From contig JAKMXF010000309.1 in NCBI GenBank assembly GCA_024704765.1, forward strand, positions 221,204-285,203: 64,000 nt of DNA, given 5' to 3'. The stretch's first letter is position 1. Every line of letters starts with the position of its first letter. The stretch comes from Oopsacas minuta. Its lineage: Eukaryota; Animalia; Porifera. Positions 4,336 through 57,399 of the stretch are shown piece after piece. The position numbers were made by a program, and so were the translations under genes. The notes under the pieces are model-generated. The model saw only the letters and a program-made list of their open reading frames with translations. It made no database searches and was not told where the DNA came from.

Positions 4336-4449
4336 GCTAGAATTCAATATATAATTATGGTTGTATATAAATTATATGTAGCGAACCCATAAGTCATAGA
4401 TTATAAATTTCTACTGGACCTTTAGCACGAGATACACAAAATAAATATT

Positions 4450-6373: not shown

Positions 6374-9300
6374 TTAAAACAGTGTTAACTCTCCAATTAG
6401 GTCTTTCTGTGAAATAGTTTTTACAGAAATTCTGGACCGAAAATCTGTTGTAATTGAGCAGACCAAATGGTTGAAAAATGTTTTTTCGTTCTTTTCATCA
6501 AATCTGTCGAAAGAGTGGAGATTTTCTTGAAGTTTTAAAGTCAATGATTCATAATTTGCTTGAATTAAGCTCATTACATCATCACTCGTTAATGAGGACT
6601 TTTGATTATCCAAAGAATATTTGTCAATTTTCGGCACAAAGTACCGAACAATTGCGAGTAAATTCTGTAAGCTATCTTTTAACTTTGGAACATTTTCTAC
6701 ATACTCCACCGGACGTTTTTTCAGCACTTCGTCAATCTTTTCGAACGCATTATTTTCGCGAATTATTTCATAAAATAATTCGTCATATATTTTCGGTGAA
6801 GACAAAAATGTATCACCGTAGGTAATGAACATATTGAAAATAACCAGAATCCTATCCATAATCAACATTATATCCATTCGCGAAATGAGATAGTTTTCAT
6901 GGGATAATAAAAACCGCATCATTGTGAAGAGTGAAAACCACAAATTCGACCATTGATAGAACATGCGAATACAATTCCTGTTTTGGAAACAAATTAAGCG
7001 ATGAATAACACCCAAACATTTCAAGCATAAATCTAAATTCAAACTTTTCCTCAACTGCCCACGGATAAATTCCGACATCAAATCAAGTATGTGACCGGCT
7101 AGTGGTAAATTCTGAAGATTTTCATTGGCAGGAAACGGAATCGGAGACACCATATGCGGTTGTTTATAGAGTTTTACAGGGAAAGGGAGATTACGATCAT
7201 GTAGGATTGTTCCAGCATAATGATCTTCAGCTAAACATATTAAAATTGTTAAACAAAGCCTTGCACGCTCTGACCAATCATAAACATTATTAATCTGGAG
7301 AAACACAAGAGAAGAATACGTAAGGAAAGTGCCCATTAAGTTGACAGGTGCTTGTGTCGCAGTATTGTCAGTTATTGGTGTAGTTGGGACCGAGTTTGAC
7401 TCGGAGCGCGAAACAGATTGCATGAGGTTGTGGAATACGGCTTCTACTGCTGGACCCTGCATGCCGAATAGTGTATGCGTATGCATTAAGGCATCATTTG
7501 TACTGGTTAGTATAGATATAAAGTTCCTATTCAGATGGACAGCTTCGTACATTGCTAATAATACTGCATCGTTTGTTTTGGAGGAGAAGGAAGGTCCTTG
7601 TACTTGTATGATGTCATCTCTTTGCTGGCCTGGAACGAAACTGCCAATGTAGTTACCTGGATATTGAAGGAAAATTTTTAATCTGTGTTTTTATCAAAAA
7701 CATGCAAAAATACAGAAAAATATTATTAGAGAAAAATTTGAAAATCAAGGCATTTTGAGATTGAATTCAGGACAAAAGTATATAGTGAGTTGGAAAGGTT
7801 ATGTTTGCATGTGATAAGACAGCAGGTAAGCAGTGTTGCCAGATCAAGAACACTGTTCATAGATTTTGCTTTACATGTAATTTTGACCTATGCCAAGAAC
7901 TTGGCATGAACCAAAACTATGCATGAACTTTTCAAGTTGTAAAGCTAATAAATTCATTTGTTTTGATTGTACCTAATCTTGACATAACTCCAGAAGATTG
8001 CTGTCTTTTCTCAAACATTTTCTCTTCAAGAGAAATATGTTCTTTCAGTGCAGAAGAAATGACACAGCCCAGCCCATTAAGAGTTAGAATATCGTCTAGC
8101 AAACTGAACTTTATCACGTATGGATGTGATGAAGCATTCTTTTTATAGCTAAGAAGTAGAGTTAGTATTAATACTGAATCATATCCGTGTTTGTCTGTGA
8201 GATCAGCTCGTGCCAGGATTTGCTAGAAACAGAAAATATTGAAATACAGAAAAGCATCAACAAGGTTTGGCAAATATTGAAATCGGTTGAAATCTCTGAT
8301 ACAAGAACATCTGTTCATATTTCCAAAAGTAAGAAAATATCGAGGAAATCTGGAAAATACCGTAAAATATTGAAAATTTCGGAAAGAACATCGAAAAGTT
8401 TTGATCTTTTTGTAGATTTCGAAATTTCAATAGCTTCTCGCTAGTACCGATATTTTCGATATTTCTTCACTTCCTACATATTGGTACAAAATGTTCCCCA
8501 AATAGTAGGCACATACATATATTTATGCTTCCAATCAATTTCCTTATATACCTTCAACGGCTCAAACACAGAAGTACTCATGAAAAATGGCAACATAGCG
8601 TTATCATTAACATCCTGTTCAGCTGTCAACATCAACAACATTAGTTTAAGACATAAGTTCTTGAGAGAGATAGGATATTCATCTGTTAGAATCCTACTCA
8701 TATTTTTAATCAAATTCTTCATAGCATCCTCATTATCAGGTGTGAAAAGTAAACTTAGAGGATCACTGGTGGATTCTGCTATTTTTTTCTTGAATGAATC
8801 TCGTATTAGAATACAGAGGGTTTGTAAAGCATTGAATGCTCGGATATGATGTTGAGCTAAACAAGAGAAATAAACATTTTCCTAATTCTTAGTTCAAATT
8901 TTGGCACCGACACAGGGCCTCTGCTTCACTGAATAAAGTTATGTCTGATAATGGGAAATACGTATACAAAAGCCTTTCTAACAAACATAGGCTCCTCGGA
9001 GTCTGAGTGGGAACAGATGGCATCATGCCTATTTGTATTATGGCGGATTCGAATCTGGGTGTACCAACCCAAAATGGCCTACTATGCTGACAAGAGAAAA
9101 CTCTCTATTATGACTATTTCTGACCTTTCCCGGATTAGGAATTTTAAAACAAGTGAAGGATTAAAATTCCGTGTCCATATCCAATTGATGTATATGAGCA
9201 CATTAACTCGTCTACAAACTCCAATCCAAAGAACCTAACCTATCGAAATATACATACGAAAAATCTTACTTGATTCCAGTTTTGAGGAATGTAGAGCTTC

Positions 9301-9833: not shown

Positions 9834-12800
9834 CTATTTACTAAAAACATGAAGTCGATAATGAGATTCCAGGTCCTTAATAACCTCGTCCTCAGTAAGA
9901 TTACTCCAATTTTCTTGAATGTAAGGATTCGATTGAATTTTAAAATGCTCAACAAAATCTTTCTCAAATTGACAAAGGACCCAGTGCCAATACTTAGAGT
10001 CAATAGCATCTTCACCCAGAATTTTCCAAGATCTAAATCTTGAATTAACTCTCCTGTAATGAATGAATTCATATAGCAGATCGTTGTAATAGAACCTTCC
10101 TCTATCTCTGAGATTCGTAGTGCACTCATTGTAACATATTTGATTGGTATATCTATCACGCCAGCCGCTGACTCCCTGTGGACGATGAAAGGTACCACAG
10201 TAGTGTTTATGATCACCACACGATAATTGACAAAGTTCATTACAAAATGGACACAGCTCTTCACATTCGAGGATAGAATCTGTAATTCTTTTATATAGAA
10301 AAGTTTCCAATTTAAGAGTGTCAGTAATCCATATTAACCAGTCGGTATCGTTCGCCATTCGTCGCAATTCTTTTGCAAATAGGCCAGAGAATTGCTGATA
10401 ATTTGAAATCGTGTAAAGGTCTAATACATCTAAGTCATTGTATGTAACATCCCGAACTTTACACTTGATTTGCGTATAGAAGGACTCTTTGAACCTGATT
10501 AACATATCTGCATTGGGGCTGCTCTCGTCATCTGGACATGCATGTGAACATTCAGAAATGAAAAAGTCAATCAGAATCTCGACATTCTTACTGATATTAT
10601 TTACAACCTTCTCCATTATATCATTTCTTTTTGAGTAAGTGGTAAGGGTATTCTGAATATTCTGAGATAAATAATTAATTGGATGATAAATATATGATAA
10701 ATAATTATTAAAGTTTTTATCGCGAGCTAAATCCTTTAGAATAGTAAGAATCAGAGAAGGTCTGTCTGAATATGTGATAATATTCTTTGAGTCATTCATA
10801 AATGCTGAAAGAAATTCCCGAGAGACACTATCAGCTAACCCATTTTTCAATCCAGAGAATACAATTTTAGCAAGTTCAAGAGCACAAAGATATTCTGATT
10901 CGATACCTTCACACAGTTTACTGAAAGTTCTTCTTAGTATTTCCTCCAAATATTCAAATTTTAGATCAAGACTTGTTCTTGAAAGAAATTCGTCTTGGAT
11001 TTTTTGAAGCATTGGGATAGCTTTACAACAATTGAAAAATATCATATCATAAATAAAATCAGTTGTAAGTTCTAGGGGCTGTTGAGAAACTTGTTGTTGA
11101 GTAGAATTATGTTTACTCAAAATTTGGTGACAAATATCAATAATAATTAGGAAATAATTAGGGTCGTAGGGACTCTGATTCTTCAAAAGAGTTGACAAAT
11201 AATCGTCAATTTTCCTTTCACATTCAGAACTCAAAATACTCAATATAATTTTAAATTGGGCATTGCCAACGTCTTCCTTTGATTCCTTAGAAAAGATCGA
11301 TCGAATATATCCAATGCCCAATCTTACCTTTGACACCATATCGTGAAGATAATAGTATGAATTAGATGTATTTTGAGGTTGTAAACTCGATAAATGTTGG
11401 AACTTTCCATTTCCAATATTAACAAATTCATCGCAATTAGAAAGAATCATTTGTTTGTCAGCTAGCACATTCATTGCTTTTATCAAAGGGGAATCGATAT
11501 AAGCCTTCTGCAGGTCTCTACTTATGTCACATAATTCCACTTTTTCAACCTGGATTTCTGATTTCCACTCATCCCAAATAGAATTAAATCTTGACTCAAC
11601 AAGAGATTTGTCACTTAATGATTCTCCTTTTTCTATAGTCTCTGTAAATAATTGATGTACTTTTAATAAAATTTCTTTACGAGATCTGACAAAATTTTCA
11701 TCCATTTTTTTCTTATTTTTTTGAAGTTTGTAGATTGAATTTAAATCTTCTTCCATTTTGTTGGTATGTTTTTCCCGCTTACATTGAAAGTAATTTTCAG
11801 TATTACCCTTCCATTGAGAATAAACTTCTACATTGTCATGAACAACAAAATAATTTTGTAGTAGATCTTCCTGAGTAGTAATTCCAATTGAAGGAGTTAA
11901 TTTTTCTTGCTGTAAATTTGAAACTAAGTTGGCACGAATCTCATCTAGCTCATCAAAATCAGCATTGAAGAGTTGGTTTATAGATTCTGATTTTGATTTA
12001 TTAAATAATTGAATATATGAAGAATGCCAAGAGGAAATTCTACGATCCAGTTCGAACCTTGAAGTGACTTCAAGGGCATTTTTATAAGAAAAGATAAAAT
12101 TCTCTTCCAGAACAGATTTCCAGAGGGCCTCAAGTTTTATCGACCAATTCATGACTGTTTGAAACTTTTTATTTGGAGTGTTGACAAAACAAGTTAGTAT
12201 ATATTGTCTGAGATTCGCTGCCTTCTTTGAATATCCAATGGAAACTTTATTCAATGGAGGTTCGCCTTCGAACAAACCTGGAAAATAGAAAACTTCTTCA
12301 TTTAGATTGAATTCGATTACGTCAGTGAATTGCTTGTAAAATAAGTTCTTATTTTCTTGTTGTGCTGCACATTCAGTCATCTTATCTAATGTCTTAATCA
12401 GATTACTTCTTGCAGTTAGAAGATTAGTATGGGCATGGGTATCAGGCACATTCTGATGCACAAACATACATCTTGGTTTGATATATGATTCTTTCATTCG
12501 AATGAATGCAAATATGATAATTTGTAAAATGTCCTGAACTTCACCATGTCCCTCTCCATATAAATTGATAATAGTCATATCTCCAAGGCCTATCGCAATA
12601 GTGGCAAGTTCATTGTCTCGCCTATAAGAAGAATCGATTGATAATTCTGGTGCTCGTAGTCCTTCAGTATCAAGTAGGACGAGGTAATCATATCCCAGTT
12701 TAGTGCGAAGCATAGATTCAATTGGAATTAATTGCATGAATATACCGCGTGTACAGCGACCGGAAGAAACAGGAAACTTAGCCCCAAACATAGTATTAAG

Positions 12801-14744
12801 GAGTGTAGACTTTCCTGTGCTCTGAGTTCCTAGGATTGAGCAGACGAAAATTTTACTATCGTATCCAATAATTAATGCCAAACTGTCCAAAACAGAAGTA
12901 ACCCAACTCAGAGCAACATGATTCGCATCACCATCAATTATCTCGAAGGCCTGTCCTTCAATTAATAGATGAGCCACTATATTATTCAAATTTTCTAAAT
13001 TGAAATTTAACGCTCTATTAAGATTGAAAATACTTTTTCTCGAAAAGACTTTATGAGCCTCAAATGCTTGACCCAACTCACGGAAAATATGTTCTATACC
13101 AAACGAAGATTCGGCAATATTCTTTGCTGCTCTTACAAGATTTTGTTTGCTTTGCTTTTTGATTTCGTTTCTTTCTTCAATACTCAATTCGGATTCAAAT
13201 TTTGTGTTGTAACTTAAATTTTGCCATTTACTATATTCTGCGTATAAGGACGGAAGATGTTCCCTCGATAAAGAGTTAAAATCATTACTCAACAAGTTCC
13301 AAATTGTATAAAACTCACCTTTAGGACTTCCGAAAGTTTTACAATGTTGAATAACATCTACAAAGATGGGAGATGGATTTTGTAAATATATAAATTGATT
13401 TTGACGAGCTTTGTTCATCTCCTGTTTTATAGTTTCTTGAGATTTTGAAATACCGACTTTATGAGAATCGCGGTTTGCTTCAGCCCAAAGCAACCAAGAA
13501 TCACCCTGAAGTGGTAGCATTGATTGTTTAGCTAATGCAAGCGGCTCAGATTCTTCTGAGTCAGTTGCTAGATTGCTCAAAATTGTTTGTATTATTTTGT
13601 CAACTACACTTTGACAATCTTGAATATTATCTTCATCTGTATCAATATAAATAGACTTTGTTTTAGCAATTTCTGTACAGTCTTCTAAATTAATCTTAAT
13701 TATAGGGACCTTCATTAGCATTGAAGAAATACTAATCGCAATCTCATTGATATCTTCGCCTAAACTAGTTTTATTCAGAAGTATAACATTATCACTTGGA
13801 GTTTCCAGAATATCAGGAAGAGTTGGTTCAAAAGTTAATTGTGAAATTTCACTCTGATAAAGTAGGAAGACAGATTTTCGGGCATATTCATTATGGAAAC
13901 TGATAAGAAATTCGGAAAGATGTTGATTACATTGACTAATCGGGACGAGAATGTATATAAGAGTAGACACTGAAGAAATGAAATCAAGCTGTTTTCGATA
14001 ATCCAATGCATTCCCTCTTAAATTCAACATCATACAGGGTTCTGGAAATATGAATTTGGAAAAGTGCGGTTCATTATCAAATTTCGGAAGCAGCCAAGCA
14101 ATTTCAACAGTTCCATCAAGAAAAAATCTCCTTTTCACATTTCCAAGTTGATTTCTATGAAAGAAATAATCAGGTATTCCAATAATTTGATTTAACATTT
14201 CGGATTTCTGACTTTTTCCACATTCACCAACTCGAATGAATGAAATTATTGGAAGATTTTCCTCAGTAACGGAGAATGATTTACCAGCATGATCTTGATC
14301 AATGTAATCTTTGTATAGCGTCTTAAGGGCAAAATGATAAAAAGTAGGCCGTTGAGGAGAAAGATGAGAAGCAATTAAAGGAAGAGATAGCTGACATTTA
14401 GATACTTGTGTGACGAAGGTTTGACGAAATATTGGAGTGCATTGAAAGAATAAATATAAAAATATATCCATAGGATGTACTAGATCACAAGTATTATCCT
14501 GCGAATGAAACTTGACCATATCCAATATTTTAACTATGCCTTGGCTTGGTGTATGAGGATTCACGTTTCTAGGAAATTGCCTACTGGTACAATCAAGCAT
14601 CATTATTTTATCTAACATGAACTTTGGTAGATCTTGAAGAGAAGTTATTTCTTGTTGGGGAAGTGTGGATGAGATTGTGATGGCATCTCGCAGAGAAATC
14701 ACGGGTGGGCGTAAAATTTCAAGATGTTTGCAAAAATCTTCCAT
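9834..14744 (-). CDS. Very large inducible GTPase (VLIG/GVIN1-URGCP family); coding region in one exon, about 1636 aa
   Basis: G1 ILGTQSTGKSTLLNTMFG, G2 VSSGRCTRG, G3 LLDTEGL, G4-like FVHQNV, DNELAT; N-terminal URGCP-like region; C-terminal CPFC...HRPQG cysteine-rich motif. Confidence 0.9.
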   Translation of the reverse strand: MEDFCKHLEILRPPVISLRDAITISSTLPQQEITSLQDLPKFMLDKIMMLDCTSRQFPRNVNPHTPSQGIVKILDMVKFHSQDNTCDLVHPMDIFLYLFFQCTPIFRQTFVTQVSKCQLSLPLIASHLSPQRPTFYHFALKTLYKDYIDQDHAGKSFSVTEENLPIISFIRVGECGKSQKSEMLNQIIGIPDYFFHRNQLGNVKRRFFLDGTVEIAWLLPKFDNEPHFSKFIFPEPCMMLNLRGNALDYRKQLDFISSVSTLIYILVPISQCNQHLSEFLISFHNEYARKSVFLLYQSEISQLTFEPTLPDILETPSDNVILLNKTSLGEDINEIAISISSMLMKVPIIKINLEDCTEIAKTKSIYIDTDEDNIQDCQSVVDKIIQTILSNLATDSEESEPLALAKQSMLPLQGDSWLLWAEANRDSHKVGISKSQETIKQEMNKARQNQFIYLQNPSPIFVDVIQHCKTFGSPKGEFYTIWNLLSNDFNSLSREHLPSLYAEYSKWQNLSYNTKFESELSIEERNEIKKQSKQNLVRAAKNIAESSFGIEHIFRELGQAFEAHKVFSRKSIFNLNRALNFNLENLNNIVAHLLIEGQAFEIIDGDANHVALSWVTSVLDSLALIIGYDSKIFVCSILGTQSTGKSTLLNTMFGAKFPVSSGRCTRGIFMQLIPIESMLRTKLGYDYLVLLDTEGLRAPELSIDSSYRRDNELATIAIGLGDMTIINLYGEGHGEVQDILQIIIFAFIRMKESYIKPRCMFVHQNVPDTHAHTNLLTARSNLIKTLDKMTECAAQQENKNLFYKQFTDVIEFNLNEEVFYFPGLFEGEPPLNKVSIGYSKKAANLRQYILTCFVNTPNKKFQTVMNWSIKLEALWKSVLEENFIFSYKNALEVTSRFELDRRISSWHSSYIQLFNKSKSESINQLFNADFDELDEIRANLVSNLQQEKLTPSIGITTQEDLLQNYFVVHDNVEVYSQWKGNTENYFQCKREKHTNKMEEDLNSIYKLQKNKKKMDENFVRSRKEILLKVHQLFTETIEKGESLSDKSLVESRFNSIWDEWKSEIQVEKVELCDISRDLQKAYIDSPLIKAMNVLADKQMILSNCDEFVNIGNGKFQHLSSLQPQNTSNSYYYLHDMVSKVRLGIGYIRSIFSKESKEDVGNAQFKIILSILSSECERKIDDYLSTLLKNQSPYDPNYFLIIIDICHQILSKHNSTQQQVSQQPLELTTDFIYDMIFFNCCKAIPMLQKIQDEFLSRTSLDLKFEYLEEILRRTFSKLCEGIESEYLCALELAKIVFSGLKNGLADSVSREFLSAFMNDSKNIITYSDRPSLILTILKDLARDKNFNNYLSYIYHPINYLSQNIQNTLTTYSKRNDIMEKVVNNISKNVEILIDFFISECSHACPDDESSPNADMLIRFKESFYTQIKCKVRDVTYNDLDVLDLYTISNYQQFSGLFAKELRRMANDTDWLIWITDTLKLETFLYKRITDSILECEELCPFCNELCQLSCGDHKHYCGTFHRPQGVSGWRDRYTNQICYNECTTNLRDRGRFYYNDLLYEFIHYRRVNSRFRSWKILGEDAIDSKYWHWVLCQFEKDFVEHFKIQSNPYIQENWSNLTEDEVIKDLESHYRLHVFSK

Positions 14745-50617: not shown

Positions 50618-51597
50618 TTTGAGTCGTTACATAGTATTCTAATTGAAACTGTAAAGATAAAAGTTGGGGAATTGAAGACGAACACATATTTGCACTAAAT
50701 CTGATCTTTACAATGGCAATTCAATTGGTATTACTCGGGGTAATACGATTACGCTTTGACTACCCGTTGGGGTTTGTATTCGTATTAACGAAGTTCCACT
50801 GTAATATTATTACCTTTCATATACTGTGTGAGAATACAGTCACGGTCGCTAAATGTGAACACATACAGATGCATTTGATAATTCGTTATTATAGTTAACT
50901 CCCATTGTATCGAACTTCAAGGGACCCCAATAATTACTTCCAAATGACCGATTAAAAATATGGTTTGGGACCATATTTGTATACTTTAAGTCTTCGATAA
51001 AAAATCGGGTATTTCAATACATCCGTGTTTGATATAACTGGAGTTGACTGTAGATAGGAAAACTCGTATTATTAACGAATATTTATACAAAAGTTTATCA
51101 AAATTGATAGAAAAATGTTGAAATTTAATATCTTGAGAAATTGTGATGATTGAAAGAAATATGAAACGCTAAAGGAAGTCTGTTCAGAATGATTGGTGAA
51201 TTTATACAAGAGGTCAAATTTTGATATTGTATAGAATTTCGGAAACATTGTGATAGCACAAAGACATAAATTCAAGCGTAGTCATCTATAATGTTACGCC
51301 TTTAATTTTGGAGCAAATTCTGTTGTCTAGATTTAATCAAATGTTTCAAACAACACGAATTTAATTCAGCATGTAATTGCCCAAAGGAGGTATTTGTAAA
51401 AGCATTTTACTGTGCCGACAATACTACAGTCAACTCCAGTTAAAGTGAAGCTCAAGGGACCATGAGTATTACTTCGATATAACCGATGAAACTTGTCAAT
51501 TTGAAGGTTTGGAACCGTATCTTAGTACAATTTCATATCAGCTGATTTATGATATAAACTAGAAAACATTCAATTAACAGTTACCATTTCTAAAACT

Positions 51598-53338
51598 CTA
51601 TAAGTGAGATAAATCAATAGGTGTTTGCATTACACCTTCATTAATTCCACTCAATAGATTCTTAACAGCTAAAATGGCCAAATTATTCCTACTTTCAAAC
51701 TCTGCACTTGCAATATGAGGCGTAATTACACAGTTATCCAACTGGTAAAGAGGATGGAAGGGAGGTAAGGGCTCTGGTGTTGTAACGTCAATACCAGCTG
51801 CTAGGATTTTCTTATTTACAAGAGCTTCGTATAAATCATCTTGGTTTACAACGGGACCGCGACTAACGTTGATAAAGATAGCAGTTGATTTCATTTGTGA
51901 GAAAACATTTTTATCAAATAAGTTTCTGGTTTCTGACGTCAGCGGACAAAGTGCGAGAATAAAATCCGAGTTTCTGAGAAGTGTTGGTAAATCTGTTTTT
52001 TCCAAAATACCCAGCGCCTAAACAAGAACAAATTCATCAAGGAATTAGTCTAGATATTCCTTCCAGTTCGTATACTAGTATAGCTAGTGGTAGTATACAC
52101 TGATCATTATAAACAACAGTTTCTTCATAATTCAATGTAGGTCCCACCTTCCCCTGTACACAATAGAAACCTTTTGGAGGCTCTGTTAGATCGGCCATAT
52201 TCGTGTATGTCTCGTATTTATGACCAGTCAATACTTTACATAGTAAAAGTGTTCTGACGTCGTATGAACCTACAGTGTACTCGTGAGATTTTGAGGAATT
52301 GGTGGCAAGGTATATCCCATGACCGAATCGTGTCCATTTATGAACAACCGATGAATTTGTTATAAAGACGGTTTGGGACCATATTCGTACAATTACAGAC
52401 TTCGATATGAGGGTTCGGCCCCGTGCGGGCCTTTCGATATTTATCCATGCTGGGGGAAGAAATAATTATAAATTCCAACATGTTCTTATAACTAGCATTT
52501 AATATACAGGAATATATGAGAACGTTTCCAGAGAAAAAATTACCTTTTCAAACTCAGGTTTCGGAGTATTTGCGATATACAGAATTCTTCCAACTCCAAA
52601 TCCTATCAACCTCCTTGCAACAGCTTGACCTATTTGACCCAATCCGACTATTCCAACTGTACTCCGATTAAGAGAGGGTCCACACATCCATAGGGGGTGC
52701 CATGGTGGCCAATCCCCCTTTTGCGCACGAGCAACACCCTCAACTATCCGTCTACTAACACTTAACAGTAGACCAATAGTGAAGTCAGCACATGCATCAG
52801 TTAGTACACCTGGTGCATTAGCTACCTGTATTGAATATTTCTTACAAGTTGTAAGGTCAATATGATCCGTTCCTACTGACATAGTTGATATCATCTAATA
52901 GATAGAGAGGGAAATATTGAATTTGTGTGTAGAGAAATATGTGAATAATTCCGCAAATCAGTTTATGTAAGAATAGGGATGTACCGGATTTTCACATTTA
53001 GTGTGAAACGAAATGTTCGAGAAATTGAATACAGTGTACGACACACCATTGTGGAGGTTACACTGTATCCTCCACAATGGCCGTCCAAAACTTACTTTTA
53101 GATTAGGCCCTGCATTTTCAATAACTTTCTTATCCACTTGATCAGGAATCAAGCATAACAATACATCAATTCCTACTACACTCTCTAACAACTCCTTATA
53201 TGGAATATGTTCTTCTGAATCTCTCACAATCAGATTGAAATTAGAATTTTGAGATTTCAATAGTTTCCATGCTGGTTCTGGTAATCTTCTCGTGAGAAAT
53301 GCTGTATATTTCTTTGTCGGTGTAGCTTGACCATCCAT
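51598..53338 (-). CDS. GRHPR: Glyoxylate/hydroxypyruvate reductase, intact copy B; exons 53338-53096, 52894-52544, 52017-51598 (about 337 aa)
   Basis: All phase-0 GT-AG junctions read through; STMSVGTDHID, GIVGLGQIG (Rossmann), FINVSRG, AGIDVTTPEP, TPHIAS. Confidence 0.92.
52037..52346 (-). pseudogene. 5'-truncated copy of the PARP-like ART gene inside GRHPR-B intron 2
   Basis: Matches 54121-54427; the start, the LFHGT motif and upstream DNA are removed by a deletion of about 415 bp; the 3' flank is shortened by 114 bp. Confidence 0.9.
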
Positions 53339-53543
53339 AGATTACTAGACTCACTAAAAATAGCTTATTTTCCTATGTGAAAATTGCCGACAATACTACA
53401 GTCAACTCCAGTTAAAGTGAAGCTCAAGGGACCATGAGTATTACTTCGATATAACCGATGAAACTTGTCAATTTGAAGGTTTGGAACCGTATTAGCATAA
53501 TTTCATATCAGCTGATTTATGATATAAACTAGAAAACATTCAA

Positions 53544-56063
53544 TTAACAGTTACCATTTCTAAAACTGTATAAGTGAGATAAATCAATAGGTGTTTGCAT
53601 TGCACCTTCATTAATTCCACTCAATAGATTCTTAACAGCTAAAATGGCCAAATTATTCCTACTTTCAAACTCTGCACATGCAATATGAGGCGTAATTACA
53701 CAGTTATCCAACTGGTAAAGAGGATGAAAGGGAGGTGAGGGCTCTGGTGTTGTGACGTCAATACCAGCTGCTAGGATTTTCTTATTTACAAGAGCTTCGT
53801 ATAAATCATCTTGGTTTACAACGGGACCGCGACTAACGTTGATAAAGATAGCAGTTGATTTCATTTGTGAGAAAACATTTTTATCAAATAAGTTTCTGGT
53901 TTCTGACGTCAGCGGACAAAGTGCGAGAATAAAATCCGAATTTCTGAGGAGTGTTGGTAAATCTGTTTTTTCCAAAATACCCAGCGCCTAAACAAGAAAT
54001 ACCTATAACACCTTTAATGCGTTTAATAATATTCATCAATAAGGAAAGCGTAAATATTTAAAATAGAATATCTTATATCAATATTATCAATACACAGCAT
54101 AAAATTCAAGAACAAATTCATCAAGGAATTAGTCTAGATATTCCTTCCAGTTCGTATACTAGTATAGCTAGTGGTAGTATACACTGATCATTATAAACAA
54201 CAGTTTCTTCATAATTCAATGTAGGTCCCACCTTCCCCTGTACACAATGGAAACCTTTTGGAGGCTCTGTTAGATCAGCCATATTCGTGTATGTCTCGTA
54301 TTTATGGCCAGTCAATACTTTACATAGTAAAAGTGTTCTGACGTCGTATGAACCTACAGTGTACTCGTGAGATTTTGAGGAATTGGTGGCAAGGTATATC
54401 CCATGACCGAATCGTGTCCATTTATGGACAGATCCACTCTTATCAAGCTTAAAACCAACTTTAGAAATCGAGCATACACCACAGTCTTTTGAATCACAGA
54501 GTTTTTTAGTTTTTACAATATCGCATTTTACTGTTGTGCCATGGAATAATAGTTCTTCATATTGACCATATGGCCCTAATGTTCTTCTGTATTCTTCGAA
54601 ACCTTTGAGTAAATTATGTGATGGCTCAATGTTAAAACAAGCTTGTAGTATTGGATTTCTCTCTTTCTTCTTTGTGAATGTAGAGTAGAACATTTCTTCT
54701 GCTTTAGTAGAATGAATGAAATGGATTGAAGGTGTTTGTAACATGCTATTTATGTTTAAAGTAATACGTAAATATGAAAATAAATGAAATTTGTTACAGT
54801 CAACTCCAGTTATATCGAGGCCCCGATAATTAGTTCGGTATGCCGATGAATTTGTTATAAAGACGGTTTGGGACCATATTCGTACAATTACAGACTTCGA
54901 TATGAGGGTTCGGCCCCGTGCGGGCCTTTCGCTATATATCCATGCTGGGGGAAGAAATAATTATAAATTCCAACATGTTCTTATAACCAACATTTAATAT
55001 ACAGGAATATATGAGAACGTTTCCAGAAGATTATAAACATGTTCTTAATACGGTCGGACATTTACTGTATACCCAGCAAATGAATAAGAGTATGATAAAT
55101 CATTTGGTATTTTCGAATATAACAAGCTCAGACAGCCAAGGGGTGTCCACATCGTAGTTGTACATGACAACATCGGAGACTCTAGTCTGTATCTTCATAG
55201 CTTGTATCAATCGTATACAAATTATCAAGCAGAACATTAATAAATAAAATGAAGGATGATATGGGTAGTTTTAAATAGAAAATATTGCACAACTGTTTCG
55301 GAGTATTTGCGATATACAGAATTCTTCCAACTCCAAATCCTATCAACCTCCCTTGCAACAGCTTGACCTATTTGACCCAATCCGAATATTCCAACTGTAC
55401 TCCGATTAAGAGAGGGCCCACACGTCCATGCTGGCCAATCCCCGTTTTCGCAAGAGCAACACCCTCAACTATCCGTCTACTAACACTTAACAGTAGACCA
55501 ATAGTGAAGTCAGCACATGCATCAGTTAGTACACCTGGTGCATTAGCTACCTGTATTGAATATTTCTTACAAGTTGTAAGGTCAATATGATCTGTTCCTA
55601 CTGACATAGTTGATATCATCTAATAGATAGAGAGGGAAGTATTGAATTTATGTGTAGAGAAATATGTGAATAATTCCGCAAATCAGTTTATGTAAGAATA
55701 GGGATGTACCGGATTTTCACATTTAGTGTGAAACGAAATGTTCGAGAAATTGAATACAGTGTACGGCACACCATTGTGGAGGTTACACTGTATCCTCCAC
55801 AATGGCCATCCAAAACTTACTTTTAGATTAGGCCCTGCATTTTCAATAACTTTCTTATCCACTTGATCAGGAATCAAGCATAACAATACATCAATTCCTA
55901 CTACACTCTCTAACAACTCCTTATATGGAATATGTTCTTCTGAATCTCTCACAATCAGATTGAAATTAGAATTTTGAGATTTCAATAGTTTCCATGCTGG
56001 TTCTGGTAATCTTCTCGTGAGAAATGCTGTATATTTCTTTGTCGGTGTAGCTTGACCATCCAT
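53544..56063 (-). pseudogene. GRHPR: GRHPR copy A: exon 1 intact, exon 2 disabled, exon 3 lost its stop codon
   Basis: Exon 2 has a 1-bp deletion, a 12-bp deletion and a premature TAG; the exon-2 donor is replaced by about 265 bp of unrelated DNA; the terminal TAG became TAC; HIAS became HIAC. Confidence 0.88.
54121..54744 (-). CDS. Stand-alone PARP-like (H-Y-E) ADP-ribosyltransferase domain, 207 aa, intronless, nested on the same strand in GRHPR intron 2
   Basis: LFHGT, FGHGIYLATNSSKSHEY, LLLCKVLTG, LNYEETVVY; C-x8-C-x4-C-x2-C insert after HGT. Confidence 0.85.
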   Translation of the reverse strand: MLQTPSIHFIHSTKAEEMFYSTFTKKKERNPILQACFNIEPSHNLLKGFEEYRRTLGPYGQYEELLFHGTTVKCDIVKTKKLCDSKDCGVCSISKVGFKLDKSGSVHKWTRFGHGIYLATNSSKSHEYTVGSYDVRTLLLCKVLTGHKYETYTNMADLTEPPKGFHCVQGKVGPTLNYEETVVYNDQCILPLAILVYELEGISRLIP

Positions 56064-56190
56064 AGATTACTAGACTCACTAAAAATAGCTTATTTTCCTG
56101 TTTGAAAGTCAATGGGATTTATTACAAACCCATATTGTTTGTAAAATCTCATCTAATAAAACAAAAATATCTCAAATTCATGACAAAACG

Positions 56191-57399
56191 ATGCGTCGTG
56201 GAAGAGGTGGAGGATTTGGGTTATTTCTACTGGGAGGTGAGATATTTCGCGTGGGAGTCAACACAATACGACCTGTAACTCTACTCACAATCTTTCTCAT
56301 GGTATTTTGTTATTTACAACCAAACTGGAGATATAATCGATTTTCATGGCCAAGATTAGATGAAGTTTGTATCAGTGTTGAAAGTACTGTCTATCGAAAT
56401 CAATGGAAACGTTTACTATTTTCTGCGGTTTTTCACGCTGATGACATGCATCTATACTACAATATGGTTTCATTTCTTTGGAAAAGTCGGCAATTGGAAA
56501 GGAAATTTGGCTCGAATTTCTACGCGTTTCTCCTGATAGCCCTAACGATTGCAACACACGCTATGTATATCGGGATTAGCATATTATTAGCTGAATACTA
56601 TTCATATGAATATGCGTACCATTGCGCTGTGGGATTTTCGGGAGTCATTTTCGCATTGAAAGTAATTTTAGATAGTTTCACGCCAAATGCGACATCAAAT
56701 GTTATGGGCATATTTTACTTACCCATAAGGTATGCATCTTGGTTTGAGCTAATATTGATTTCTATTTTAGTGCCGAATGCATCATTTGTCGGTCATTTAT
56801 CTGGTATTTTGGTTGGTGTGTTCTCGATTTGGTTGTATAAAACTTGTATACGAAGAAGGAATTATTATTTCGGTCGGTCAGATAGATTAGGTAATGGAGA
56901 AGAAGATCTAGAATTGAGGAGAATACGAGCTGAAAGATTAAATCAAGAAAGGGATAATGAAAGGAAACGAATCGATAAATTAGGTAAAATTTTTATAAGT
57001 TGCCCAAAGGATTTGGGGAGTATTACCATATCATGTAAAAGTTCATAGATTTTAGCTTTGGCATGGATTGTCCGCAAGTCACTTGGCCAGAAACAGAACT
57101 ATGCAAATAGTGTTAAATAACTCCGGTTAATCAGGTCAAAATGGCCAGACTTGGCACTATTAAGCGAGTCTATTGTGTTCTAATTTCATTTATCTCTTCG
57201 TTTAGAAAAGGAAATGATTGAACAGGCAAAGCAAAGATCTTTAGAAGATGTAAGGAACCTTTTGCCAGACCCAGTTATACGAGATAATCCACCTTCTCAA
57301 GAAAATAAAACTTTTATTGATCCAGATAAAGAATTGAATTCAGAAATTGCTGAACGAGAAGCGATGAGAGCTGCGAGATTGGCTAAATTCCAGAAATAA
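56191..57399 (+). CDS. RHBDD1: Rhomboid protease RHBDL4; exons 56191-56983 and 57206-57399
   Basis: HLYYNM, catalytic GFSG, GHLSG; C-terminal UIM-like MIEQAKQRSL and VCP-binding-like AMRAARLAKF. Confidence 0.9.

Follow-up and report, generated by a model that had tools for sequence, protein, structure and literature searches.

Probable partition of a GRHPR gene and its two predicted intronic passengers between young tandem duplicates in the sponge Oopsacas minuta

The locus described here lies in a 64,000-nucleotide stretch of the genome of the sponge Oopsacas minuta (NCBI GenBank assembly GCA_024704765.1, contig JAKMXF010000309.1, positions 221,204 to 285,203 of the forward strand), which is referred to below as the window and whose own numbering is used for its coordinates. 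As assembled, it consists of two tandem copies of a gene for GRHPR, the second intron of which hosts, on the same strand, a gene for an ADP-ribosyltransferase (ART) and a predicted box C/D small nucleolar RNA (snoRNA). In the assembled haplotype, one copy retains the GRHPR reading frame and the other retains both intronic passengers, a pattern that probably reflects ordinary complementary degeneration of a young duplicate. In a gapped alignment, positions 51413-56099 form two units that lie head to tail and carry their genes on the minus strand. Unit B, the downstream copy (51413-53374), contains the intact GRHPR gene and a 3' fragment of the ART gene, and lacks the snoRNA. Unit A, the upstream copy beside the native promoter region (53385-56099, delimited by alignment to B and by tblastn), contains GRHPR remnants, the snoRNA and the intact ART gene. 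Between the units lies a junction of about 10 nt (53375-53384), which falls outside the aligned repeat and resembles positions 51391-51400 in the left flank. The units differ by 36 substitutions over 1970 aligned nucleotides (98.2% identity). An earlier note, made from the sequence alone, had proposed tandem GRHPR units with a same-strand ART gene in intron 2, and the alignment bears this out.

Unit B carries a GRHPR gene in three minus-strand exons, located at 53096-53338 (81 codons, with only 36 nt of native 5' flank), 52544-52894 (117 codons, with an intact GxGxxG motif and a GT donor) and 51598-52017 (139 codons and a TAG stop). The introns are GT-AG and in phase 0, and the spliced reading frame encodes 337 amino acids with no internal stop, in keeping with the intact GRHPR that the earlier note had claimed for this copy. 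Exons 1-3 match PF00389 and PF02826, the catalytic and NAD-binding domains of the 2-Hacid_dh type. When exon 3 alone is compared with the human GRHPR structures 2gcg and 2h1s, the E-value is 4.8e-40, against 1e-25 for the next family. Judged by these matches, the host is GRHPR, a predicted member of the D-isomer-specific 2-hydroxyacid dehydrogenase family.

The GRHPR copy of unit A is disabled in the window, and all of the lesions that the earlier note had listed (a frameshift with a TAG, a 12-bp deletion, and the loss of the exon-2 donor and of the stop codon) are present in the sequence. Exon 1 (55821-56063, minus strand) is identical to that of unit B. The remnant of exon 2 (55295-55619, minus strand) has lost 1 nt near 55439 and 12 nt (52688-52699 of unit B) in the conserved WPPWHPLWMCG loop, has gained 1 nt at 55350, and lacks its last 14 nt together with the GT donor. 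A TAG stands in the shifted frame at 55370-55368, and the Rossmann motif GLGQIG, which is in frame in unit B, is out of frame here. In the remnant of exon 3 (53544-53987, minus strand), the TAG stop has become TAC at 53568, which gives an 8-codon extension, and two residues are replaced (L282S and S302C), both of them invariant in the related loci described below.

The first passenger is an intact single-exon gene of 207 codons (54121-54744, minus strand; open reading frame 54744-54121), and the claim that unit A holds a complete ART therefore stands. Its product is a stand-alone PARP catalytic domain that matches Pfam family PF00644 over residues 19-193 (E 6.7e-15, 55.6 bits, cut-off 26.7); a search of NCBIfam with it gave no match. 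The H-Y-E triad is formed by H68, Y117 and E180, all three of which are kept in six orthologues. Y117 and E180 align to the GIYFA and catalytic glutamate positions of tankyrase, and H68, which lies in FHGT, was assigned from the position of the sequence motif. The Atlas structure model (predicted template modelling score, pTM, 0.88) is closest in fold to PARP domains. Domain match, triad and model together point to a predicted enzyme, a PARP-type ADP-ribosyltransferase. Orthologues in six other assemblies are 74-84% identical, and the ratio of nonsynonymous to synonymous divergence (omega) is 0.03-0.10 where synonymous divergence (dS) is estimable, dS being saturated for most pairs. These values place the gene under strong purifying selection. 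The orthologue of Vazella pourtalesii, encoded on the Vazella metagenome scaffolds L009/L010, is present as a complete open reading frame in a Trinity transcriptome (EukProt EP00800), in which the transcript ends are not visible. The counterpart in unit B is a fragment (52037-52342, minus strand) that comprises codons 106-207 and the stop and lacks the start codon and the catalytic histidine. The sole nonsynonymous difference in the part of ART shared by the two units is a change from H to Y, derived in B.

Several further features of the ART family were recorded. Four cysteines (C74, C83, C88 and C91) lie in an insert of the catalytic domain (residues 74-92; window 54496-54522) and are kept in the six orthologues; the insert is reminiscent of the zinc site in the catalytic domain of tankyrases. 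An AG dinucleotide precedes the ART ATG in six taxa, at a distance of 1, 4, 4, 4, 4 or 7 nt that is always 1 modulo 3 (window 54745-54750; L001, L002, L003, L004 and L009). It could be an acceptor for cis- or trans-splicing, or a chance occurrence in AT-rich sequence. Horizontal transfer of ART from fungi was suggested by the first protein search, in which identity dropped from 74% to about 40% in Agaricomycetes. This idea was countered by an Atlas search, which found stand-alone proteins with a PARP domain in fungi, arthropods, chordates and cnidarians alike, and by the presence of more distant paralogues in other sponge-type assemblies (L005/L006). In another assembly, at L005 and L006, three to four stand-alone PARP-domain open reading frames, about 42-44% identical to ART, are clustered outside GRHPR beside a gene with a NADAR domain, a family linked to ADP-ribose removal. 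The coordinates recorded for this cluster, over L005 and L006, are 1860-2327, 8001-8582, 10177-10722, 14179-14414 and 10859-11506.

The second passenger, which the earlier description did not list, lies in host intron 2 upstream of ART, in unit A only (55120-55207, minus strand). It is the only match that Rfam yielded for the region, and it is to RF00333 (snoZ157/R69/R10, clan CL00063), with 36.5 bits and an E-value of 7e-5. The match recurs once per locus in the related loci L001-L004 and L009/L010, always between the exon-2 donor and ART, with E-values of 1.6e-4 to 1.8e-3. All scores, at 35.2-38.2 bits, are below the RF00333 gathering score of 55. The C box reads AUGAAGA or AUGAUGA and the D box CUGA, and alignment and folding give a terminal stem of 4-5 bp with one change from A-U to G-U. 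Across five taxa, 61 columns of the alignment are invariant and the remaining intron is unalignable. The C box, the D box and both guide stretches are invariant, and the guide stretches match the Rfam consensus. No second copy was found in the window within three mismatches of the 17-nt core. The conservation argues that the match is a real box C/D snoRNA that resembles RF00333, membership of that family being not established. On the strength of these predictions, GRHPR intron 2 carries two passengers, the snoRNA and ART. Intronic box C/D snoRNAs in animals are usually released from a host that is transcribed and spliced.

Unit B has lost sequence from its second intron at three places. The segment nearest to exon 3 is a stretch of 114 bp (53993-54106, minus strand) between the ART stop and the host acceptor, which contains two ATTAAA hexamers in unit A and is absent from B; its deletion between the CAAGAA repeats at 53993 and 54107, proposed earlier, is confirmed. 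The second segment was given in the earlier note as about 415 bp from the 5' part of ART, and the alignment gives 416 bp (54427-54842, minus strand), comprising ART codons 1-105, 51 nt upstream of them and the head of a repeat described below; in its place unit B carries 5 nt of filler. The third, also missing from the first description, is a 267-bp intron segment with the snoRNA (55027-55294, minus strand, from the alignment), opposite which unit B has 26 nt (52532-52557) that represent the end of exon 2 and its donor. All three deletions in unit B remove passenger sequence, and all lesions in unit A hit host exons.

The ancestral state can be read from presumed glass-sponge loci of five taxa, namely L001, L002, L003, L004 and Vazella L009/L010. 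In all of them the order is a divergently oriented rhomboid gene, GRHPR exon 1, exon 2, snoRNA, ART, exon 3, and then acyltransferase, WD40 and cyclophilin genes, and the GRHPR and ART reading frames are intact throughout. The window shares these rhomboid, acyltransferase, WD40 and cyclophilin neighbours, and a sixth assembly has the same gene order, taken from gene calls alone. ART lies wholly inside one host intron, on the same strand, in unit A of the window and in L001, L002, L003a, L004 and L009/L010. As judged from the shared order and the intact frames, the nested arrangement is old and stable. A single GRHPR with an intact nested ART, which the earlier note had expected in relatives, is present in L001, L002, L004 and Vazella L009/L010. 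These five related loci have exons, donor and stop like those of unit B, and an intron like that of unit A, with the snoRNA and a full ART. Consequently, the polarity of the lesions in both units is fixed.

The same comparison polarises the point changes. GRHPR coding sequence differs between A and B by 15 substitutions, of which 8 are nonsynonymous. At seven of these sites A has the derived state and B the residue that all or most of six relatives share; B has the derived state at none, and one site is unpolarised. A split of 7 against 0 has a binomial P of about 0.008. Therefore, this count indicates that GRHPR-B is under purifying selection and that GRHPR-A is not.

The explanation judged probable is that the host gene was copied head to tail with its passengers and that the young tandem duplicate then underwent ordinary complementary degeneration. 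The ancestral unit of about 2.7 kb would have comprised GRHPR exons 1 and 2, an intron with the snoRNA and ART, and exon 3. Unit B would have kept the GRHPR coding sequence and suffered three separate deletions in intron 2: one of about 294 nt that took out the snoRNA, one of 416 nt that took the 5' part of ART, and one of 114 nt that took the flank 3' of ART. Together they would have shrunk the intron from about 1.35 kb to 526 nt. Unit A, beside the native promoter region, would have kept the snoRNA and ART while its GRHPR frame decayed. This decay may have begun with a cluster of substitutions and the 12-nt deletion in the WPPWHPLWMCG loop, to which the assembled haplotype would later have added the frameshifts and a deletion of about 50 nt that cost exon 2 its end and its donor. 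What survives of unit A would be a transcribed vehicle for the snoRNA and ART; by analogy with other intronic snoRNAs, release of the snoRNA presumably requires that the unit is still transcribed and probably also that it is spliced. The earlier suggestion of a recent tandem duplication followed by complementary decay agrees with the divergence of about 1.8% and with the polarised lesions.

The earlier note went further and saw in the duplication the resolution of a conflict inherent in same-strand nesting. According to this explanation, the formation of the ART 3' end just before the host acceptor competes with host splicing, and selection favoured the separation of the two genes. The ART stop lies 121-384 nt before the acceptor in the relatives and 133 nt before it in unit A (19 nt in unit B), so that in all taxa cleavage and polyadenylation would compete with removal of the intron. 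The one-sided distribution of the lesions, with passengers hit in B and host exons in A, would also follow, and the host copy that survives lacks the native promoter, which is not expected by chance alone. Of the claim that ART needs its own 3' end about 130 bp before the acceptor, the spacing holds. However, a conserved AATAAA or ATTAAA polyadenylation hexamer was not found in the ART 3' flank among six taxa, being present only in the window and L003a, and an intronic 3' end of ART's own is therefore putative. Furthermore, reciprocal loss is itself about half of the neutral outcomes (~50%): after the first loss, the second has an even chance of striking the other unit. The pattern alone therefore calls for no conflict.

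The relatives provide two further tests of a nesting cost. First, the nested state has persisted in five other taxa to saturation of synonymous sites, with both genes intact and ART at the low omega given above, so that any cost has long been tolerated. Second, L003 has a second intact GRHPR (10055-12929) directly downstream of the first, without a snoRNA in its intron 2 and with no ART remnant found there even at an E-value of 10. This older, passenger-free copy in a second lineage could be taken to favour selective separation, and in L003 as in the window it is the upstream copy that holds the passengers. In L003, however, both GRHPR frames are intact, and the polarity is reversed: the passenger-free copy diverges faster than the ART host, with nonsynonymous divergence (dN) to outgroups of 0.26-0.32 against 0.21-0.25. 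The two L003 copies are 96% identical in exon 2, 94% in exon 3 and only 70% in exon 1, with unalignable introns, a dS of 0.28 and an omega of 0.38; such uneven identity among the exons hints at gene conversion of part of the gene or at a mosaic origin. The long coexistence of host, snoRNA and ART in the relatives and the polarity in L003 thus argue against a strong nesting cost, and resolution of a conflict is regarded as unlikely. The term un-nesting is likewise only partly apt. The genes have been partitioned between the units, but ART and the snoRNA still lie between exons 1 and 3 of unit A, within its exon framework. The outcome is a partition, with the enzyme in B and the passengers in A, which "un-nesting" overstates. 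Complementary degeneration would suffice to produce it, and a selective conflict would not be needed.

Whether two units exist at all was assessed with k=31 contigs of four sequencing runs placed on the window, of which X1, X2 and X3 were compared. Searches for runs yielded none of RNA for this organism, only runs of unknown kind from one sample and one relative; a close relative, seen as run X5, differs by about 4%. Contig coverage is even over introns and intergenic DNA, and no joints skip an intron; therefore, the runs were treated as DNA. Runs X2 and X3 carry the same sample label as X1 and differ from the window at scattered sites, including in the unique flank. The ends of their contigs coincide exactly with 51413, 53374 and 56070 (k-1 before 56099), which implies two continuations at both ends of the unit. 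Segments shared by the units stand at about 2.2-2.6 times flank depth and unit-specific segments at about 1.4-1.6 times, and both A-type and B-type exon 2 are present, the latter with its deletion junction. Two units per genome are the better reading of X2 and X3, because alleles would give half the observed depth ratios.

The runs also differ in the unit-A allele that they carry. X1 matches the window exactly, also across the A-specific segments and where the donor deletion joins 55294 to 55295; none of its contigs covers the +1 site at 55350. In X2 and X3, a contig leads from the A-only intron segment (55295) through 27 extra nucleotides to an intact exon-2 end and donor, and this unit-A allele lacks both the +1 and the -1 change. 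When the X2/X3 variants are applied to A exon 2, the frame is open and the GxGxxG motif is intact and in frame, the remaining differences being the 12-nt in-frame deletion and four derived residues. The worst lesions of unit A are specific to the assembled haplotype and are polymorphic or very recent. The earlier statement that exactly one working copy of each gene remains is consequently true of the assembled haplotype, but not of the other A allele with its open exon 2.

A different view of these data is that A and B are alleles, or sequences of different individuals, which the hybrid assembler stitched together in tandem. An identity of 98% is within the range of allelic divergence, and the O. 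minuta assembly was built from libraries of different adults as a hybrid assembly, with SPAdes, SSPACE, pilon and GapFiller and with short-read polishing (PMC10280926). Such a mixed and polished assembly can create mosaics between near-identical copies and would explain the different unit-A alleles of X1 and of X2/X3. Against this view, alleles predict 0.5 and 1 times flank depth for unit-specific and shared segments, rather than the values at or above flank depth and about twofold that X2 and X3 give. In addition, the junction has its own sequence of about 10 nt and no run of N. Finally, as alleles, one haplotype would be without a working GRHPR and the other without ART and the snoRNA, all of which are strongly conserved in every relative. 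An assembly artefact is therefore considered quite improbable.

Some observations nevertheless weigh against the complementary decay of two tandem units, the assembly history just described among them. The X1 contig runs unbroken through the left boundary at 51413, and bins around the junction have about one quarter of flank depth in this run; the duplication could be heterozygous or polymorphic among the animals sequenced. These two features of X1 would also fit an assembly artefact. No contig across the B-to-A junction (53374-53385) was found among those listed, which are k-mer contigs only. Unit A of the window is itself a mosaic, B-like at 55351-55402 and similar to the other A allele at 55417-55460, which suggests local conversion or repair, or else a mosaic introduced by polishing. 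The last of these points concerns function: GRHPR-B keeps only 36 nt of native upstream sequence, and its route of expression is unexplained.

Two routes to GRHPR-B expression are possible, namely read-through from unit A followed by the joining of A exon 1 to B exon 2, and spliced-leader trans-splicing. They lead to a further interpretation of the locus as a single transcription unit. Here the native promoter would drive transcription through A and B, and GRHPR mRNA would arise either from A exon 1 joined to B exon 2 or through spliced-leader trans-splicing, with the AG that lies 15 nt before the GRHPR-B ATG as acceptor; ART and the snoRNA would be intronic passengers of the enlarged gene. 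The short native flank of a coding sequence that is under purifying selection fits this interpretation, as does the loss of the A exon-2 donor, which favours skipping of that exon. Moreover, there are no differences at all between A and B over about 290 nt (53084-53374 against 55809-56099), which span exon 1 and the 36 nt upstream of it, where 5-6 would be expected (Poisson P about 0.003-0.006). This identity means either that both first exons are still constrained or that they were recently homogenised. Spliced-leader trans-splicing has been reported in a glass sponge (PMC10282587), and an AG lies 1-7 nt before the ART ATG in six taxa and a few to a few tens of nucleotides before the GRHPR ATG at every locus compared. 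However, AG dinucleotides are frequent in AT-rich sequence, and in Aphrocallistes vastus only about 4% of long complementary DNA reads showed trans-splicing (PMC10282587). Furthermore, unit A has the same 3' flank as unit B (108 nt identical), so that poly(A) signals should stop many transcripts before they reach B. The single transcription unit is accordingly given little credence. It is also unlikely, if somewhat less so, that unit A is a non-coding host gene, with promoter, first exon and splice sites retained for making an rRNA-guide snoRNA and ART, and that its promoter also drives GRHPR-B by read-through, with either A exon 1-B exon 2 splicing or trans-splicing.

The surroundings of the units hold several further features. 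A divergent gene with a rhomboid domain lies at 56191-57048 on the plus strand, where the relatives have the same neighbour. The distance from its ATG to that of GRHPR-A is 127 nt (gap 56064-56190), and the two genes probably share a bidirectional promoter region, 36 nt into which the duplication breakpoint is situated. A family of repeats resembling short interspersed nuclear elements or miniature inverted-repeat transposable elements (SINE/MITE-like) starts with ACAGTCAACTCCAGTTA and contains GGTTTGGGACCATAT. Copies lie at 51426-51520, 53398-53492, 54796-54950, 52348-52455 and, inverted, at 50900-51051; one of them stops 51 nt short of the ART ATG on its upstream side, and each unit has a copy immediately within its left end. 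Heads of the repeat occur at 4449, 4570, 15197, 17266, 17410, 31682 and 34576, the head motif matches the window 11 times against 0.01 expected, and read depth over the family is 10-20 times that of the flank. GRHPR intron 1 contains, in both units (53046-53080 and 55771-55805), a perfect hairpin of 35 nt with arms of 12 nt (CCATTGTGGAGG and CCTCCACAATGG) and a loop of 11 nt. It may belong to a dispersed element, because contigs of several runs end or diverge there (loose ends at 55776, 55793 and 53067).

The complementary degeneration favoured here can be compared with known systems. It resembles duplication-degeneration-complementation in that a redundant unit is resolved by complementary loss, through simple deletions, frameshifts and point changes, with the retained GRHPR under constraint. 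It differs in that the parts are separate nested genes rather than the regulatory subfunctions of one gene, and in that the present event, at about 1.8% divergence, is both very young and in part polymorphic. UHG and GAS5 are non-coding snoRNA host genes, and unit A would be analogous to them in that its coding capacity is gone and its intron holds a conserved box C/D snoRNA. Unlike these, the same intron of unit A also holds an intact protein-coding ART, and transcription and splicing of unit A are putative.

A precedent for differential loss is provided by the vertebrate LRRTM/alpha-catenin (CTNNA) nested pairs, which were duplicated and of which some copies lost the host and others the nested gene (PMC3933685). 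The two cases are alike in the duplication of a nested gene with its host and in differential loss, which there left un-nested descendants (PMC3933685). The vertebrate events, however, date from ancient whole-genome duplications and their lesions are no longer readable, whereas the present case is a local tandem of 2.7 kb in which the two decayed partners can still be seen and a snoRNA is involved as well. In the genome of Aphrocallistes vastus, about 12% of genes are nested, many nestings are conserved and microsynteny is extensive within a compact genome (PMC10282587). The locus described here, with the same synteny across six taxa, conforms to this picture; duplication and partition of a nested locus are not described in the passages of that paper found by a term search (PMC10282587).

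The complementary loss at the GRHPR/ART/snoRNA locus is an unusually legible case of a known process rather than a new mechanism. Nesting of genes is widespread, and exceptionally so in glass sponges. The loss of nested arrangements is rarely visible, because old events leave no readable traces. At this locus every step is still readable: the junction, the three deletions in B, and the frameshifts and the loss of donor and stop in A, together with an allele at an intermediate stage and five outgroups that fix the ancestral state. If the doubtful reading of unit A as a non-coding host that also drives GRHPR-B were true, a snoRNA host gene and an operon-like two-gene unit would have been born from one tandem duplication that is still polymorphic in an early-branching animal. 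The locus offers a system for studying the cost to a host of same-strand nesting, expression from 36 nt of upstream sequence, and the fate of a snoRNA once its host stops coding.

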